From the NCBI GenBank assembly GCA_964270895.1, contig OZ185440.1: 64,000 nucleotides of DNA. One strand, 5' to 3'. Below, piece by piece: positions 7,690-20,000 of the stretch. A program made the position numbers and the translations under genes. The DNA comes from Podarcis filfolensis. Lineage: Eukaryota. A model generated the notes under the pieces. That model was not told the DNA's origin. It searched no databases and saw nothing but the letters and a program-made list of their open reading frames with translations. How positions within the stretch are numbered: the first letter of the stretch is position 1; every line of letters begins with the position of its first letter.

Positions 7690-8550
7690 GTTTACCCCAT
7701 ATAGCCACCAAGTACTTTGGCTATGCAGTGCACACAGACGTAAGGATCAAGGAGGGTGCTACTGCTTTCTTTGCAAAAAAATTAAGGCCAGGTGAGCTTA
7801 GGAAGTCATTCTGATCTGAAGCAATCATGTGGGAACCCTTAACTTATGATAAAACTCAGTGTGCATTTGCTGGTCCTTCCTTAGGCATGCATAGCAGCTA
7901 TAAATCACAAAAGCTTTCTTTTGATGAAATCCCATTAATCAATATGTAAAGGCCATTGGGAAGTTGAGGAACGCAAGCCAATGGCGCTTCTGCAGAACTT
8001 CCTGGTGGATTGTACCAAATAGCTGTAATTAAGGAAAATGCTGGCAAAATGAATATATAAAAGTACCTGTGTGAATTTGATTTTTCTAACAGTCGGGGTT
8101 GCAACAACAAAAGTGGTGAGCAGGGAGGGAAGAATGCAACAATTTAGCAAAAAATCAGTATAATACTTAAATCCAATCTTTTGCAAATGAAAACCCGGAA
8201 TCTCGAGTAATCTACGGGCAATTTAGTAAAAAGGAATGAACAGACAGTTCCAAAGTAGTGCGTCTAAAATTAAATCCCGCTTCATGCTATAAAGCTTTGG
8301 GCAAAGTATCAGCTTCCTGCCTCGATTCCCCATCTGCTAATAGTAGTAATAACAGAAACGATAATTTGCATATCACAAAAGACTGCTGTGATTTACCATA
8401 TTTTGCAAGGCCCTGAATATTCACGGCACTCCTATAAATGCTGCAATATTAGTATTTTTTCTCTCCCTGCAACAAGAGCTTATCTTTATCACTAATTATA
8501 GCCATATAATTACAGTTGCCTGAAATATGACTGCAGAGTTTGCATCCTTT

Positions 8551-8556
8551 TTTATT
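8551..8556 (-). terminator. Putative polyadenylation signal AATAAA (with an adjacent ATTAAA)
   Basis: The minus strand reads ...ttATTAAAAATAAAaaagg, about 1.7 kb after the stop. Confidence 0.5.
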
Positions 8557-9513
8557 TTTAATAAATCATATTCCTATTTGAATTTTTAAAAAATCTGTTA
8601 TGTAAATGGAGGAGGCTGCCAAACGCTTTTGTAACAGAGCTCATGTTTCTGATCTTGATCATATGTGACTATGACTAGAATATCAAGTAGCAGCAATGAC
8701 CTCTATTCAATAGAGATATATAGGCAGCTCCTACACCAGACCTCTCCATATAAATTGAGAACTGTAAGGGAGTGATGCTAAGCTGAATTTAGCCAGCTCA
8801 CACGGTGAATAATCGAGCTTATGACTCATATGTAAGAAAGAGCGTTTTACCTATTTGGAAAAAAAATTCACATTTATTTACTGTCAAACAGGTGTTAAAC
8901 TTTACATTGGATATTAGTGATGGGCTCATTATTAACAGGTTTACACAAAGGGATTGAAAAAAAAGCAAAAAAACCCTGAAACAATGTACATTTAATTAGA
9001 TCTTTTATCATAAAATAAATTAATTACTAAATATAGGCAGGAGGAATATGGAAGAGTATTTATGTTTTCTCTTAGCTTAAAAAGGTCAGGCACCTTTAAT
9101 TCATTAGTTTGTTTGAGATTCACTAGTATGTCTGTCCCTTTGGCCACTTCCCTTCCTTTCAGCCTTCCTCAAAGTTAAAAGAATGAAAAGGGAAGTGATT
9201 TATAACCTGATATAGATTTTTCTTTTTTTTAAAAAACACAACAACCCAAATTTCATAGTGTGCAAGGCATGAAATTAATTGGCGTCTAAAAGAATTCTGC
9301 CCAGAAAAATATATATGTTCTTTTGGCAATAAGAAATTTAAAACGTAAGAAGAAATACTAACGTCAAAGCAGAGCACTGTTTACAGTGAAAAAGAAGTGA
9401 AAATGGATAGAACTTTTTAAACATATTACGCTACTATGAACCAAGTGTAAAAGGGGGACGGGGGGGACGGACAGCTTGTAGCATATGTGCAACCAAGAGC
9501 GTTTTCACAATAT

Positions 9514-9646
9514 NNNNNNNNNNNNNNNNNNNNNNNNNNNNNNNNNNNNNNNNNNNNNNNNNNNNNNNNNNNNNNNNNNNNNNNNNNNNNNNNNNNNNNN
9601 NNNNNNNNNNNNNNNNNNNNNNNNNNNNNNNNNNNNNNNNNNNNNN
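9514..9646. other. Assembly gap (133 N) inside the 3' UTR
   Basis: Run of N. Confidence 1.
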
Positions 9647-9942
9647 CAGTTCATTGTACAGTTGAGGAAATATATGAAATAAGGCCTGTGGCTTGATTGC
9701 TAGTGGTTAGACAGGTTTTCAATCTTTACCTTTATGGAAAAGATTTGCAGTGAACCGCAAACTGATGCAGAATCTCTCTCCTGCTTTTTGCAAGTCTTGT
9801 CAGGAATAGTAAGGTACAGTAAATTTGTCCCACAGGATTTTAGCGCCTACGTCTTGTATATAATACAATGCAGGCCTACAAAAAATGATGCAGCCATATT
9901 TACAAATTTAGTTCACAAACTGCTGCAGTAAAATGGCTGGAA

Positions 9943-9946
<4 letters not shown>

Positions 9947-9976
<30 letters not shown>
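9947..9976. repeat. (TG)15 microsatellite in the ADGRL2 3' UTR
   Basis: Direct reading. Confidence 0.95.
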
Positions 9977-9979
<3 letters not shown>

Positions 9980-10266
9980 TTCACAATCTCTTTTACGTCA
10001 GCAGCAAGATATCTTAAAATACCTTGATGGTATCTCTTTTTTTTCTGTTTGTAACAAATAATTCTTTTAGTATACTCTGTGTATATACAAAGCTTTGTTT
10101 TATAAAAATTCACAGAACTGCAAGGTCCAGTCATCTCCTTTACACGGGAGAAACCACAGGGACAACAGAAATTGTCGCTTCGAGCAGATATGAGGGAGCC
10201 TGCATGGGGCCAATTAAGTCTGTTTAATACTTGCAATGTGGCCTTCAGTATTCCTTTGCTACACTA

Positions 10267-11021
10267 TTAAAGGCTTGTCACTAGTTGCATTTGTCCTTCC
10301 CTAACGTCCCCTTCCGGAATACATCCTTCCTTGTTAATGGGAATTATATAGCCGTCACTATTGCCCCTGCTGATTTGATAGTACATCTGAAGCTGATGGC
10401 CAGCTCCAAGGTTTGGCATGCTCTTGTAGTAAATGTCCTCATTCTCGCTCCTCCTGGAGGGAGAGAGGTCTTCCTCGATGTCGGGACTGCTCTCCGGGTA
10501 AGGAGAGTCTCTGAGGTTGGGCATGCTTGTGTACAGAGAGTCTCTGTTGGGGGACTGGAGGTGGTCTTCAACTTCGGCCGTCAGCTGGGACACATAGCTG
10601 TCTGTTCCTTCCGTCTTCACTTTCTTCTGTGGCTGGTACAGAAGGGAGTGAGTCCGTTGGGGAATCAGAGGTGCCTCGAGTTCCTTTTGGTGCAGCTCCA
10701 GGCCGGCGTTATCACTGTGCATCAGAGACGAAGCATCTGCTACAATGGCGTCGTCTTCGCTACTGCTCCCGCCGATCACAGCTTTGATTGGCAATGTGCG
10801 CTCTAGGTTGTGGTTCTTGCTGCTGCCCCGCAGGTTGTTGTGTACTAATTCCGAAATGATCATTTTCTCAAAGGCGGTGTCATTCAGGCTTAGCCCACAG
10901 TCTACAACTTGCACGCTGTCGTTGTAGTCTCCGTTGCGTAAAGAGTAGCTGTTGTTGAAATTACCATTTAGCGGTAGAGTATCCATGGCACTTGTATCCC
11001 TGGCATTGTTCAGTGAATGTC
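10267..11021 (-). CDS. ADGRL2: ADGRL2 terminal coding exon (GHSLNNARD...GQMQLVTSL*, class I PDZ-binding motif), 755 nt including TAA
   Basis: ttctgtttcag|GACAT; ORF 10267..11061 in the track. Confidence 0.98.
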
Positions 11022-14000
11022 CTGAAACAGAAAAGGGACATCTTCGTGTTATTGCCAACACCAGAGCCCAACGTTCTTATTCTATAAAGGTCTTTAATGT
11101 AGTTCAGGACAAAGTTGTACTTGAAAGTAAGACTCGAGGAACGTGAGGAGGGGGATGGGACTTCCCCAAAAGTGTAAGGAGTTACGCACCTTATAGAAGA
11201 GAGAGAGAATTTTACAGAGTAATACTGCTTTTCCGTGGAGCGTCAATGATACTTTGAATTTAGGAATTTGAAAACAAATGGAAAAGGTTCAAATGCAACA
11301 ATTTAGCACCCAGTTGTATAGCTCTTCCCTCAAGGAAAAGAATGGTCACTCCATGCACTTGCATATGTAATGCAAAGCAATCAACATTTATATTTTTAGT
11401 GCAACACCATGATTCGGGGGGGGGGGGGAATGAACGCAACATAATTTGTCCTAAACAACACTAAATTAAAAAAAGAAAAAAAGGAATCAGGTCACATACG
11501 AAACATAAGGCAAATGTGTAACAATAAACCCACGTAACTGGCAAGCAACTATTTTAATATATAGCATTTCTAACATTTCCTCTCGTGTGTGTGGTTTTTA
11601 TTTATTTATCTGAAGATGGAGTAAAGAAAAGAATGGAAAAAAATGGACAAGTACATAGATTTCATGTTAAGCACAGACAGCCACCTCTCACACTAACAGG
11701 GATTGAGGCCCACAAGCACCATNNNNNNNNNNNNNNNNNNNNNNNNNNNNNNNNNNNNNNNNNNNNNNNNNNNNNNNNNNNNNNNNNNNNNNNNNNNNNN
11801 NNNNNNNNNNNNNNNNNNNNNNNNNNNNNNNNNNNNNNNNNNNNNNNNNNNNNNNNNNNNNNNNNNNNNNCTCAGCAACTTAGAGCAAGGGTTCAGCAAA
11901 TTAGATTACTAGCAATAACAGCTCTCTTTTTTTCCCCAATATGATTTTTGTTTTGTTCATTTTTAATTTTTGGTTGCGTTTTAATATTCTCTCCGCCAGC
12001 AACGGTGGCAGGCTTCAGGAGGTCAAAGTTCGCCTGCAGCTTGCATCAGTCACAGTGACAGCACTGAATGAACCAGCATAGTCTGTTAAAGAGTTAGGCC
12101 CACAGACATTATGGGCGTATGGAAGTCAAAAGCAGAGATGTCAAGGGTTTCTCTAAGCATGGGTCACAGAAATTAACCAAAGAAGAGATATTAGCTGTGG
12201 AATGGGAGGAGATTATCAGCCAGGGCCGATATCTTTCAACTGCTGGAGAAATGGAGAAATTGGATACATCTGCGGGAAAGATGAAAAGAAGTTTTGGAAA
12301 GAAGCGGGGGGGGGGGGCGCGACTGGAATTTTATGGTGACATGCTCTTTTTCTATACAAAGAAATTCCATTTTTTCTGGAGACACAAAAGACATGTAAAC
12401 TAAGACATCACAGTGCTTCCCAGGCAAAGAAGAAAAAGAAAGCTATGAAAGAAACTGAATGGCATGTATCATGGATAAAGTTAGATGGTTTGTTAGTGAA
12501 CTTTTAGAAGAATCGCTTTTAGAATTCTAGAGCAATGTTTGGAGGGGGGGGGCGAAATTAAGAAAGAATGAAATACTGTTGTTGGAATGGAACTGACCAC
12601 TGTGAGGCTGCTGCATCACATGCAAGGCTTGGAGTTGTTACAGAGAAATAAAAGATTGTGTGTGCCTCTAAGAACGTTTCCTGTTTTACTTTCAGACTGC
12701 ACTTAAAGCTGCAGCTTAAGCAAGAAAATTCAAGTTGCTTCTATAAAGATAGAAAGATTGGGTTGATGCCCAAAAGTAACTGTTCTTTGGTCAAAGAATA
12801 CTTTTTTTTTTTTAAGTGGAATAACTGCCGCTAATCTTGTATTGTGTTGTTCTAGCCATCCATGCGTACTGAATTAGTTAAAAGGATAGCAATTCTTTGA
12901 AAGCCTCTCTAGGCTTTGATTAAACAACTTTTGTAGCTGGGTATTTTCATATATGTTCCCTGATCTTTCTTGCAAAAGCTTTATCCATATGAAACATATG
13001 GCATTTATAAGAGAGAGGCAACACTTGGACCACATGCCGGCATTAATTTCCCCTCTGAAGGCATTCTCTCTCTCTTTCTCTCTTTTTAATAATCTAATAC
13101 TTTATCCTCTATTAAAGAGATATTGAAGCATATTTAATAATCCAAAATGAATTTTCTATGATGTACTGCAGAGTTAAGCACACTTGAATGTACTTCAACC
13201 AGTTTTAAAGAGGCAAGTTTAGTTGCCCGTGATCAGGTAATTCACTTGAAGTCTTTCATAGCCTGTAGCAAGATTACTGTGGGAATGTGGAAATGTTAAG
13301 TCAATTATTAAGCATTTCTGCTCAACTGTGCTCTGGTTTTAAGCAGCAAATTATTTCAGCATTGGATATCATAAGTTACCAATAGGGCTTGCTACAGACC
13401 TCTTGTGATTTGATTTTTGATTATTATTTTTTTAGATTGTTCTCCGAAAAGCAGTACACATGTACTGTTTGAGCGTGGAAATATTTCATTTGCAAATTGT
13501 GAACCACTTGCCCGCTGAGTCTACTTCATGACCGCTAGTTATATTTTAATTGTGCCCATTAAAAATCATGCTGAAAAAATTTACATTTGATAGGCAAAGT
13601 TAAGTTTTACTCCCATACTTGTCTCTCTGTAGGTTGCTAGAGGAAAGCATAAGGAAAGTAAGAAAACACGAGAATGAACATAGAAACTGCAGTTCAGTTT
13701 TAAAGAATAAGGAACTTTGACATGTAACAACAGCTTTTTATATATAGCTATATAGATATATAACAAAGTATAAAATTCTTAACACAGAATTTCAATTACA
13801 TTCGAGGCTAGTATATTTGATGGCTTATTCCACTAATAATTAATAAAGATGCATTAATTTTTGAACTGGCTCAGAAGTTAAGAAAAGCAGTTGGATAGTA
13901 CAGTATAACAAAGGTGGGGTTAGTAATAAAGCCTTGACATCCTGATGCTACCATCGCTGCCCGTAGCGCTGAATTAATGTACTGGCAACTAAATAATGCA

Positions 14001-17000
14001 TCAGAGCAGTGTCAAGTTAGGAGACAGTTGCTCGTAGCAGAGCAGGAGGTACGTCCCATCCTAAGCATCTAGTTGCTGGTACAGCAAATAAGTCTTAGGA
14101 TCAGACTTGTGCATCCCACATAAACGATGTTCTTCTAATTCTAGCCAAAGGGGGAATGGAGAGTTCCTATAAAGCTGCACTATACTATAGTTTGCCTCTA
14201 AATATGACTCCGGATTCAGTTTCCCACACCAGGACGATCCGGGTGTCAATATGCCTCTTTGTGCGTTTAATTGTCTGATCAACTCCGTAAGCAGATTGTT
14301 TCTCAGCAAGCTTCAGATTAATTTTATATTGCATAGACATGATACCTCTAAGTGATATATATCTTGAAGATGGGCTCTCGGACCATGGAGTGTCAGTCCT
14401 GTAATAGTATATTAAGATTTATGCCACCTGTGTTAAAAACATGGGAGGATTATTGGCAAATACTATTATGGCAAAGGCATTATCACTATAATATAGTGCA
14501 GTTTTACAAGCCTGGCGTTATCAGCAGTACTTCTCGACGGAGAGAAAGAAATATATGGACGGCAATTCTAGGTGTCCGGCCAAATTAACCGACGGAGGCT
14601 CTGAGCAAAATACCATCAAGAAACAAAAGCAAAAGCAACATATCCCAAAGTGTGGGCACACCTGGTGAGTTAAACACAGGAGCTGAAGGGGCATTACATA
14701 CAACGGTTTCAGCGAGCAATGTGTTATAAGGATTGTTAGTGCCGTGTGGTCGAAGAAGAGGGTTTGTTAGTAGGTAATTGCCAGTCATTCCTAAAGCAAA
14801 GAAACAGAAAGAGAGACATCAGCTCCTTAATTTGATTCTGACAGTTCCAATAAAGTATATATATTTTTTTACAAAAATGTCATCATGAGTCGTGTATATC
14901 TTGTCAAATTTGATTCAGCCGAACATTTCTGAATGTATTTGAACTACTAATTTAACGGACGAGAGGGAAAATGTAGTTAGAGTTCAGTAATTCACAGGTG
15001 CTGGCCAAATCCCCAAAGTAAACACCTGCTAAGAATGACATTTGCTAATTTATACAAAATCACTGTTAAAACAAGAATAGCAATTAAACGCAAAGACCAA
15101 TGTTCTATTTCAAGATGTTACAGCTTAATGTCTCTAACCTTAAGCATGGGTAATAGGCGCCGTAATAGAGAAATCAAAATTGTGTTAATTTAGAGCCACG
15201 CCGGTCAATCTCGGAAACCTACAGGGTTTATTACTAACTTAGCCGGGGGGGGGGGGGGAGAGCAAGTGAAAAACAACCTCTTCAGCCAAAGGTAAGTGAT
15301 GGCAAGCTGCATGAAGCCTTTCTTGTTATATGCTGCAAAGGAGCGCATGCTTAAGGGGAGGCATGGAGGGGGTGGGGGGTTGGAGTTGAGGGCAAATCAT
15401 TCATAAATTCTTATGGGAGAAACGAATTCATGCTGCAACGCTATCTGTTAGAATTTTTAAGTGAGTTATGTTTAAGTTATGTCTGTCCTCCCTGCAACAA
15501 TAATCTTAAATGAACACACTGAAAGCTAGAGCAAACAGCTTATTTCTGCAATTTCAATCCCAATGCATCAACACTTTTTGCATATGCCCTCTAAAGAAGC
15601 AGAGAAAGTTTCTAAGCAATTTGTTAAAAACTAGGCATTTGAAAACCCATATTGATCTTGGGTATCTTAAATTAATACAGTTGTCAGGGGAGATGGAATT
15701 ATGGTGCAGTCTTTGTGGGCCCAAATGCATCATATATACACAAGCAAGGCGAAAGTGCCGTTCTGTTGAGCAGTGTGACAGTGGGTAGGAGAGGTGGATG
15801 TTGTCTGAATATATTACATGTCCAGAATGAGATAGAGAGCAGCCAAAAAATTTACATACAAAATTTAAATTGATTAGGTTCTCATTGTGGCAATAGCAGC
15901 AGATATTACATTTTAAATATTAATGCCTTTATCACTACTCAAAATATTATTACTGTAGGTAGCAAAAATCCTGCAGTTCAGGGAATTGCTTTACTGACAG
16001 ATTATGTTAATCTTATTTGGTGTTTGGTTTCATTTATTTGATTTTCACAGTTTTTTTAAAGATGCAATCTAAATACAAGAAAGTGCAATTCAAAGAATCT
16101 TCCCCTATGCTGTACATTGCAAACTTTACACCACATGGCAATTTCAGCTAATTACCATAATTCCCCACCTCTGTCTTAATTTCTGCGCTGTGGAGGAAAG
16201 ACTAACGATTCTCTAACTCTAGTGTGTTGGCTCTGAGAACTCAAAGGTCATGGTCTTTTTTATTATTATTATTAACTGAAAAATGCAGCACTGGCTACTA
16301 GAAGTTCAGAGCACATTTCACAGGGAAAGTCCCAGTGCACAAAAACTCACGGAAATTAGTGGAAGCTTTCAAATGGGACTTGCTGTTTTCTCTTAAAGAT
16401 TGTGCCCAACTAGCTAGCTCAATACAGCAGACCCTAGAATTGCAAGGAAACTGGAGGAGATGCTGGCAGTACAACCAGTCAGACAATGGACGATTTTCTA
16501 CTTCTTCCAACAAAAAGAAGTGCTATATGTTCTATTCACACGCCATTTAAAAAATAAAATAAAATCTGGCTTGGGGCCTATTCAGATGTTGCTTGCCAGG
16601 GATAAATGTCAGCCAGCAGCTATTCTACATGCATTTCCTATTTCTTTACGGAGAAAGAAGCATCTCAGATTGGTTGTACCATGATTTTGAACAAAAGACA
16701 TTCTGGCTCCACTACCCCAACACCAATCCCTGAAGGAATGGAAACTTTCTATTGTGGCATCAGGGGGATACAACATTCAGAAAAACGTGGTAACAGCCTA
16801 GATAAGAGGTTACTTCCTCTGGGAAGGGAGAGAGGGAGGCTGTAATTGGGTTATTTTTTTTCCTTGTTAAAATCACAGTGGTCCCCTACCCTAGTAGCAT
16901 TTTCAATTTGCCAGAAAAGCTGGCTGTGGCCGAAGGGCTGATTGTTGGTTCAAAACATCTGGACAGCGCTAGGCTGGGGGTAGCAGATCTAGATTTATTC

Positions 17001-20000
17001 CAAAGGTGGATTTCCATATGTATCTGGGGGTACATAGTTGTACATTAGTATTTTTTGAGAAAGTGTCTATTAATATATTAAGATTTGGATGAGAAGCTTT
17101 GGTTAGTTTACTGCTGGAGATGGCATGGGTAGCCTTCATAATCATTTAGTATACTTCTGTGAAGTCTTGAATGCCTGAGAACATTCAATCTGAGTTATAG
17201 TGATAAAACTGTGACCAGACATCTTAAGTCTGTTCTGTGGCTTTCCCCTCCCTTACTTCTTTTCAGGTTGTCATGTGGCAGACAAATGCTGTACGTTATA
17301 GATATGATCAAAACTATACTGTGGGGGAAACCCTATTTGCAGATGTCTTTTGTATAGAGCTGATGTCAATTTGATTTCACAGGCAAAATGTCCGCATATG
17401 GAAATCTTATGCATTTACAATGTCACTGTGCTGGTATAGTTCTGTTTCAGTTTTAGACTACAAAGGTTAGCAAAAGTTTAAAATTATGTTCTTGCTTTTA
17501 TGTTTAAATTATTGATGAGACTTATTTAAATAAGATTTCCATGAATAAGAATGTCAGATTCAATCCTGAGCAAAGAGCATGAGGGAACTAAGGTTTAAAT
17601 GTGTTCAAGACCGAGTTGAGCTATAATTTTATACAATGTGTGTGTGTGTGCTTCCATTCCAATGCTGAGATATTTAACCTACCTACCCCAGAGCACATCT
17701 GCTTATTTGATTTATTTACTGCAACCCAATTCTCCTAAATTCTTATTTGAAAAAAATACCGCCGAAAGAACAAAACTAGAGTGTGATGTGTCCAGCAACT
17801 GACCTTGATTAAGTGTTGAAGTGCTATTGATATCACCTGAGATAAAGGATGATTCAGATTGTTTTCTCACAGTGTCATTCCACATCCTCCTTATTCGGCT
17901 CTGTTAACGGAAGAAATAGGGCATAGTTGTCACATCTTACATGGCAACCTGGCACATTTAGCTACAATCCTACGGAAGCGTACCTTGGAGTAAGACCCAG
18001 TGAACACGGTGGGGCTTACTTGCAAGTCAGCATGCACAGAATTGCACTGTTAACCTACTTCTCTGTCATGCCTGCCGCGATGCATGTTCTTACGACCAAA
18101 GTATTGGAGAGGAGTATGGAACTGGCTGTGGTACGCTTGGCTTCAAACTAGTTTCTGGTTCTTTGGTGGCCACTTAGGACATCAGTTGGTTCATGCTGCT
18201 GGGTATCTTTCTCTTCAGCCTGAGCACTTAGTGCTGGACAGTCTTGTGCCCAAGCTGAGTTGCAACTAACTTCAGTCCCAAAGTGTAGAGGGAAGTGATG
18301 CACTTAATTATTAAGACTGGAAAGTCATCTAATGCACGTTCTTTTAGCTGAGCTCTGGCATTAAAGTTTAGGAAGGTCTTTTGGAGCTGCAGCATTTGAT
18401 AAGGGAACTGGCCTAGGCTACATAAAGAAAAATGAGGTTGAATGCATTTGATGGTTGCTTCTTTAGTTGCATTAAAAAATAAATAAATTTAACAGAAAGC
18501 AAATGTTTGGACTTCTTTTTCAAAGGAAGGGTAACAATGTATTTATCTTTAGTGTCACTGATCAAACAGGCAGTCCAATCAGGCTACTATCTTTCTCTAC
18601 TTGTAGTATTATTATGCATACGGGAAAACTTCCTGAAAATGGTTATATTTACCTTTGTAAAATGGAAAGTCATTTGTGAAACATGTAGTCTCCCGAACTG
18701 ATTTATATTAAGCATGTCTCAGACTTACTGCTGACTATACACGCTATTAAAAATCACATCTCTTGGCCACTTTCTGGCCATAAGTAAGCTCTAACTCTGC
18801 TTATGGACCAATAAGAGAGTTTGTTGTTAGTGTCTTCTTTTTTAAAAACTAAAAAATAAATAACTACTATGAAGCTTAACCTTGAAGGAATGTTTAGAAT
18901 CAGGCCCAGAATATATTAAAAAAGCATGCAATTGTCATCAAGGCTATTATAATGAGAACACAATTAGTGCATCTGAATGGAACACATCTCAGTGGGCTTT
19001 TTATAAGCAAGGTTAATTAAAAGATGCTGTCATTAAAAGGTTCTGTCAAAATGTTTGTTACCTGAGTGCCAGAGGAATAGCGAGCACTAGTTCTTGTAGT
19101 CGATGCCTTTACTGAACTGTGTGGGCTCTCTGTTGGCAATCCTCCACAGCAATACGAATGTCTGAAGCACTTGCCGTACTCCTTACGTACCTGTATGTTA
19201 ATAACGATGCTCATAAATATTCATGCTTTCATTTTTAAATAATCTATTTCTGTATGTATCTATCTGTATATTTCTAGCCTACTTGCTCCTGAGATCTGAG
19301 GCAGACAGCAAAGGTAAACAAGGCCTTCTGAAACAGGGCCAATTTTATATTTCCAAGAAAATTAAGAAAAATGTATTAAATTTTTACAAAATTAAAAGCA
19401 TGTCAGTGAAGCACAAAATCCTTGCCTCTCTTACGCCTTGCAATTATCCTTTCTCTAGTTATCTTCCTAGCTGGGGAACTGCAGGTAGAAGGAAATCATA
19501 GACAAAATGTCCCCCATGATTCACATTCCAGTGTGGCTTTGAACCATGACCAGGTGGAGGTTGTGTCTCGACTGGTTTTCCCAGTACACTGCAAACAATT
19601 CCAGACGTACTCTGGTGTGACCACTTATGGCTTGAAGAGAGCCAGTCTGTGCCAAGCAGCTCTGTTGGCTAACAAAGTGGAACGAGAGCAATGAAGACAG
19701 CTGGGCACCATAGTTGTAGTGGCTTGGGAAATGGAACAACAACTTCACCAGTGCATCCAAGGTTTATGGGGAGCCCAGCGGTGAGGTTAAAAAGGTAAAG
19801 GGACCCCTGACTATTAGGTCCAGTCGTGACCGACTCTGGGGTTGTGGCGCTCATCTCACTTTATTGGCTGAGGGAGCCGGCGTACAGCTTCCGGGTCACG
19901 TGGCCAGCATGACTAAGCCGCTTCTGGCAAACCAGAGCAGCGCACAGAAATGCCGTTTTCCTTCCCACCAGAGCGGTACCTATTTATCTACTTGCACTTT

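Follow-up and report, generated by a model that had tools for sequence, protein, structure and literature searches.

We found that the ADGRL2 (latrophilin-2) gene of a lizard very probably carries its own copy of the latrophilin C-terminal frameshift switch, as described for exons 30a/30b and 31 of mouse Lphn3. A small exon with two alternative donors precedes the large terminal exon, and its longer form would lead into that exon in a shifted frame, replacing the long cytoplasmic tail with a short one. Since the frameshift-switch mechanism has already been published for mouse Lphn3 and is indicated for Lphn2, the present finding is a rediscovery. What is added here is comparative evidence suggesting that both the shifted tail and the exon extension leading into it have been under selection since before the teleost-tetrapod split.

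In mouse Lphn3, exon 30 is spliced either from an internal donor, giving form 30a, or past that donor, giving form 30b (Wang et al., Nature 2024, PMC10830413; preprint 10.1101/2023.10.02.560463). Form 30b changes the frame in which exon 31 is read, and the gene has three C-termini, encoded by exon 31, by exon 30b plus exon 31 and by exon 32. Found in 20-25% of mRNAs and preferred soon after birth, form 30b moves coupling away from Gs towards G12/13. Scaffold recruitment and synapse formation need the PDZ-binding motif, which only the exon 31 frame contains (all PMC10830413). For human and mouse, a 2019 review (PMC6629964, citing Sugita et al. 1998) describes tandem splicing of the C-tail in Lphn2 and Lphn3 but not Lphn1, with two mutually exclusive forms that have a common start, and a 2026 paper (PMC13108381) describes an Adgrl2 exon 28 of 43 aa together with variable exons 29-31.

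The window, i.e., the whole 64,000-nt stretch of DNA that was analyzed, contains the 3' half of lizard ADGRL2 on its minus strand, and all exons and motifs located below lie on that strand. The coding part of the terminal exon (10267-11021) encodes in its main frame the long latrophilin tail, as seen from the open reading frame listing and from homology. In a database search, the 250-residue translation of 11019-10270 matched, at 99% identity, a protein of Gekko kuhli that bears the name ADGRL2 and, at ~90%, rodent (Lemmus) ADGRL2, whereas ADGRL3- and ADGRL1-type proteins reached only 36-52% identity. The Pfam family PF02354 (latrophilin cytoplasmic region) matched 10270-10941 with E = 2.3e-82, spanning profile positions 138-372 of 372. 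The last residues of the long frame, VTSL (10270-10281), are a class I PDZ-binding motif. Judged by these sequence matches, the gene is the ADGRL2 ortholog of the latrophilin (ADGRL) family.

Upstream of the terminal exon, three tail exons were delineated, each analyzed singly, by reference, with the split codon read as X. Exon A (17804-17900), a constitutive exon of 97 nt with AG/GT flanks, encodes the proximal cytoplasmic tail and runs from phase 0 to phase 1; it is 86% identical to its teleost ADGRL2 counterpart and is also present in the spliced database proteins P0001 and P0005. Exon B (14662-14790) is an in-frame cassette of 129 nt, or 43 aa, entered and left in phase 1. It is included in the Gekko ADGRL2 protein P0002, skipped in P0001 and P0005 and conserved in teleost ADGRL2 and skink ADGRL3. 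The third, exon C, has one acceptor (13636, with AG at 13638-13637) and two donors, located after 13619 and after 13585. The internal donor (GT at 13618-13617) defines a short form of 18 nt (13619-13636) that is in frame and adds six residues, and the distal donor (GT at 13584-13583) defines a long form of 52 nt (13585-13636) that runs from phase 1 to phase 2, so that the terminal exon is read in a shifted frame. With T at -1 and no G at +5, the distal donor is a weak one. Database proteins from shark and of ADGRL1 type (P0046, P0102 and P0103) contain a 6-residue insert matching the short form. In this lizard, exon C is probably used. When the exon A region of the Gekko protein (P0002:57-131) served as the query of a word search, the matches were genomic read-through ORFs only, and no transcript-derived ORF containing exon C came up. 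Unspliced read-through at the distal donor (13581-13587, minus strand) meets an immediate in-frame TAA, which is supplied by the donor's own GTAA; intron retention would therefore also yield a short tail, ending one residue past exon C. This in-frame TAA was common to all ADGRL2/ADGRL3 loci examined.

This arrangement resembles that of mouse Lphn3 exons 30a/30b and 31 in several respects: a small exon has an internal and a distal donor, its long form shifts the frame of a large terminal exon bearing the PDZ motif and so leads to a short C-terminus, and the in-frame cassette exons upstream match. It differs in gene and species, being found in the ADGRL2 paralog of a lizard, and it is for mouse LPHN3 only that the inclusion level, the developmental regulation and the Gs-to-G12/13 shift are known. 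The Lphn2/Lphn3 tandem splice (PMC6629964) matches exon C and the 43-aa exon 28 of mouse Adgrl2 (PMC13108381) corresponds to exon B, although, unlike in our reading of exon C, a frameshift is not spelled out for Lphn2 in the text of the review consulted.

The terminal exon begins at 11021, its acceptor AG being read directly from the sequence at 11023-11022. Entered in phase 1, it completes a split Gly codon and continues for 250 codons to VTSL, with a TAA at 10269-10267. Phase 2 entry gives 19 codons followed by a TAA at 10963-10961, and phase 0 entry gives only DIH before a TGA at 11010-11012. Direct reading of the sequence thus confirmed the initial annotation in the acceptor at 11021, the VTSL tail, the 52-nt exon at 13636-13585, the stop at 10963-10961 and the DIH reading.

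From these elements, the following sequence of events can be proposed. Skipping of exon C would leave the long tail with its VTSL PDZ-binding motif, while use of the internal donor would keep that tail and add six residues. Use of the weaker distal donor would add ~17 residues, and, 52 being a multiple of three plus one, the terminal exon would then be read in the other frame over its first 60 nt, up to the TAA at 10963-10961. A receptor made by this route would be without the 250-residue tail and its SHANK/PSD95-type scaffold-binding motif, and would have ~20 residues in their place. By analogy with mouse LPHN3, we infer that such a lizard short form would lose scaffold recruitment and show an altered G-protein preference. 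Under the standard last-exon rule, the isoforms are predicted to escape NMD. The idea of a splicing-driven switch in which the 52-nt exon leads to a PDZ-less short tail had been put forward in the initial annotation, and it is supported by the conservation described below and by the literature on the mouse paralog.

An open alternative frame of 19 codons is expected by chance with a probability of ~0.4, from (61/64)^19, and is not significant alone; the three-codon DIH reading is trivial by chance. What makes the phase 2 reading meaningful is its conservation, not its openness alone. We therefore turned to homologs, for which the genomic DNA around the tail exons was fetched and the loci were classed by local blastp. 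The set comprised skink ADGRL3 (L001), ADGRL2 of a second reptile (L002-L004), ADGRL2 of two teleosts (L005-L007 and L014), teleost ADGRL3 (L008-L010), bird ADGRL3 (L013) and a sauropsid ADGRL1-type gene (L011-L012); database hits whose origin was unknown and might be mammalian were left out. When 19300-11038 was compared with the teleost ADGRL2 locus by local blast, four conserved blocks only were recovered, namely the three tail exons A, B and C and, farther upstream, the exon at 19192-19059.

Exon C was 92% identical to teleost ADGRL2 over 89 nt, intron flanks included, and 80-84% identical to skink ADGRL3, again with its flanks, the exon core being nearly invariant; bird and teleost ADGRL3 gave the same result. 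The exon is thus nearly invariant across ADGRL2 and ADGRL3 of lizard, bird and teleost, and both of its donors were invariant in 6 loci. Exon C is homologous to the skink, bird and teleost ADGRL3 exon, and it is through these genes that we take it to be homologous to mouse exon 30. The 34-nt extension between the two donors, although it belongs to the intron whenever the short form is spliced, was 100% identical between the lizard and both teleost ADGRL2 genes. When ADGRL2 and ADGRL3 were compared, the extension had five variable sites, four at synonymous third positions and one giving an F/I change. Because its variation is almost confined to synonymous third positions, the extension looks translated.

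These data bear on the objection that the lizard does not use the distal donor and that the frame is open merely as a consequence of conservation of the main-frame peptide. The probability of ~0.4 for an open frame of this length speaks for such an explanation, but full (100%) identity of the extension between lizard and teleost ADGRL2 is not what unused intron would show. Moreover, the same main-frame peptide is written in ADGRL1 with codons that differ synonymously at many positions, and the alternative frame is unconserved there. We consider that chance has next to no prospect of being the correct explanation. The deep conservation of both the exon extension and the overlap in ADGRL2 and ADGRL3 instead argues that the short-tail form, though low in abundance, is an old, selected and translated product and not splicing noise.

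To the extent that the long form of exon C is used, the first part of the terminal exon (10961-11021) would be dual coding, its phase 2 reading consisting of the 19 codons and the TAA at 10963-10961. This frame was open in all seven ADGRL2/ADGRL3 sequences (7/7), each of them ending in W-stop. The stop occupied exon nt 59-61, except in the teleost ADGRL2 genes, where a 3-nt insertion in the overlap places it at nt 62-64. The insertion (L005:10085-10145; L014 near 9850-9910) adds one residue to each frame, and both frames stay open. In the ADGRL1-type gene, the main-frame peptide is equally conserved but is written in different codons, and the shifted frame encodes an unrelated peptide.

To more quantitatively assess this constraint, we counted identical codons among those encoding the same amino acid, and compared the 17-codon overlap with the rest of the exon by a one-sided Fisher test. 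All ADGRL2/ADGRL3 pairs had 67-100% identical codons in the overlap, against 37-60% in the rest for the deep comparisons, with p varying by pair; the eight sequences form pairs that share branches, and independence holds only for the paralog split and the two comparisons of lizard with teleost. For lizard and teleost ADGRL2, 13/16 codons were identical in the overlap vs. 85/179 in the rest (p = 0.009), while for skink and teleost ADGRL3, the corresponding counts were 15/16 and 79/173 (p = 0.0001). In contrast, there was no excess in any comparison with ADGRL1, where 25-42% of codons were identical in the overlap and 33-50% in the rest. Between lizard and teleost ADGRL2, codon identity dropped from 13/16 to 5/15 in the 18 codons just past the alternative stop. 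The initial annotation had asked whether synonymous substitution is suppressed across 10961-11021, and it is, in ADGRL2 and ADGRL3 though not in the ADGRL1 control. Stops breaking the +2 frame in ADGRL2 of other species, which had been named there as evidence that would count against the idea, were absent from all seven ADGRL2/ADGRL3 sequences. Conceptual translation of skink and bird ADGRL3 DNA agrees with the short ADGRL3 tail cited in the initial annotation, and retention of a dual-coding segment in both paralogs is likewise supported by the conservation.

A more serious alternative is that the 52-nt form is real and functions through truncation only, with an unselected short-tail sequence. 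The nucleotide conservation would then reflect splicing-regulatory RNA signals such as enhancers, silencers and protein-binding sites. Splicing enhancers are often found at exon starts, and the introns flanking exon C are conserved as well. Among the conserved intronic elements in ADGRL2 is a GCATG motif at 13567-13571, 14-18 nt downstream of the distal donor, which was present in the lizard and the two teleost ADGRL2 loci and absent from the ADGRL3 loci; from its sequence, it may be an ADGRL2-specific Rbfox-type splicing enhancer. Within the exon C extension, however, variation at synonymous third positions is the signature of protein coding and not of an RNA motif. The overlap itself points in both directions. 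Most substitutions inside it are silent in the main frame and alter the residue of the alternative frame, so the constraint on the alternative frame is partial, as this alternative would have it; yet A/V and M/T, two amino-acid changes of the main frame, leave the alternative-frame residues as they are. Signals in the RNA would also leave several other observations to be accounted for, since the alternative stop lies at the same place in 7/7 sequences, codon identity in ADGRL2 falls just past that stop, and ADGRL1, which has the same acceptor, shows no constraint. On balance, we regard truncation without selection on the peptide as unlikely, although it deserves to be taken seriously.

If the short tail is itself selected, a further reading, which we put forward tentatively and with somewhat less than even confidence, is that it forms a module of its own. 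This module would consist of ~37 residues, made up of the exon C extension and the shifted start of the terminal exon, and would have been under purifying selection in ADGRL2 and ADGRL3 since before the teleost-tetrapod split. Two cysteines are invariant in it, and it also contains a G-Y-S/T-T stretch and ends in tryptophan; the single ADGRL1 sequence examined has not retained it. Were this reading true, the short tail would have a specific function, e.g., lipid anchoring or the binding of a partner that sets G-protein preference. The module was not dissected in the mouse work.

The headline of the initial annotation, that the terminal exon is readable in all three frames, went further than the frameshift switch favored here. 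Its phase 1 and phase 2 routes stand, but the phase 0 route depends on a 53-nt exon that we could not support, so the headline was overstated. It is nonetheless true that the phase 0 reading stops after three codons, and a splice-site scan of 17803-11022 did yield six AG..GT intervals of 53 nt with an open phase 1 reading, any of which could in principle deliver a regulated third product ending in DIH. By local blast, however, none of the six was conserved in teleost ADGRL2 (0/6), whose only aligning blocks are the four named above. The best of them, 11408-11460 (minus strand), which may be the 53-nt exon meant in the initial annotation, was not supported as an exon: in the second reptile it measures 45 nt, because a poly-C run varies in length, and at 45 nt the interval would not shift the frame there. 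A strong pyrimidine tract marks this interval, and the second reptile shares its splice-site-like flanks by conservation; the interval may be a cryptic exon particular to one lineage, or may have no significance. The phase 0 TGA (11010-11012), for its part, sits within a conserved main-frame codon pair, Leu-Asn or, in one teleost, Met-Asn, and was found in every paralog, ADGRL1 included. It is accordingly a by-product of the main frame and needs no selection of its own. The literature on latrophilin tail splicing, to the extent of the sources cited here, mentions no such exon. Regulated use of the acceptor at 11021 in all three phases is therefore very improbable in our view, and the real third product of this acceptor is the in-frame 18-nt form of exon C, in which the long tail is kept.

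The surroundings of the terminal exon were also inspected. Comparison of the sequence downstream of the 3' UTR with the reptile and skink loci, by blastn and tblastx, revealed no counterpart of the alternative terminal exon 32 of mouse Lphn3 and detected only conservation of the 3' UTR itself, to ~8436. The 3' UTR (8436-10266, minus strand) was 74-88% identical to that of the second reptile over ~1.8 kb, compared to roughly 70% in introns, and it contains a CA/TG microsatellite near 9933-10020. Two runs of N occur in the window, at 9514-9646 (133 nt) and 11723-11870 (148 nt). At two of the comparison loci, bird ADGRL3 (L013:1-4153) and a cod-like ADGRL2 (L014:1-9127), the annotated long gene model ends upstream of the terminal exon, with a small gene of its own annotated for the tail exon; these models look like annotation splits at the alternatively spliced region.

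Dual-coding exons that are read in two frames via alternative splicing are known from CDKN2A (INK4a/ARF) and GNAS (XL-alpha-s/ALEX). As in those genes, one stretch of DNA in ADGRL2 would be translated in two frames, with synonymous change suppressed in the overlap. Unlike in those genes, the overlap is only ~57 nt long, and the second frame serves mainly as a short, early-terminating tail and not as a separate protein.

Splicing of the latrophilin C-terminus decides postsynaptic scaffold recruitment and G-protein preference, and it controls synapse formation in the case of mouse LPHN3. Our contribution to this picture is modest: the nucleotide sequences of the frameshifting exon and of the shifted short tail are conserved in ADGRL2 and ADGRL3 across teleosts, squamates and a bird. 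While this involves no new kind of mechanism, the conserved short-tail motif offers a concrete target for testing.
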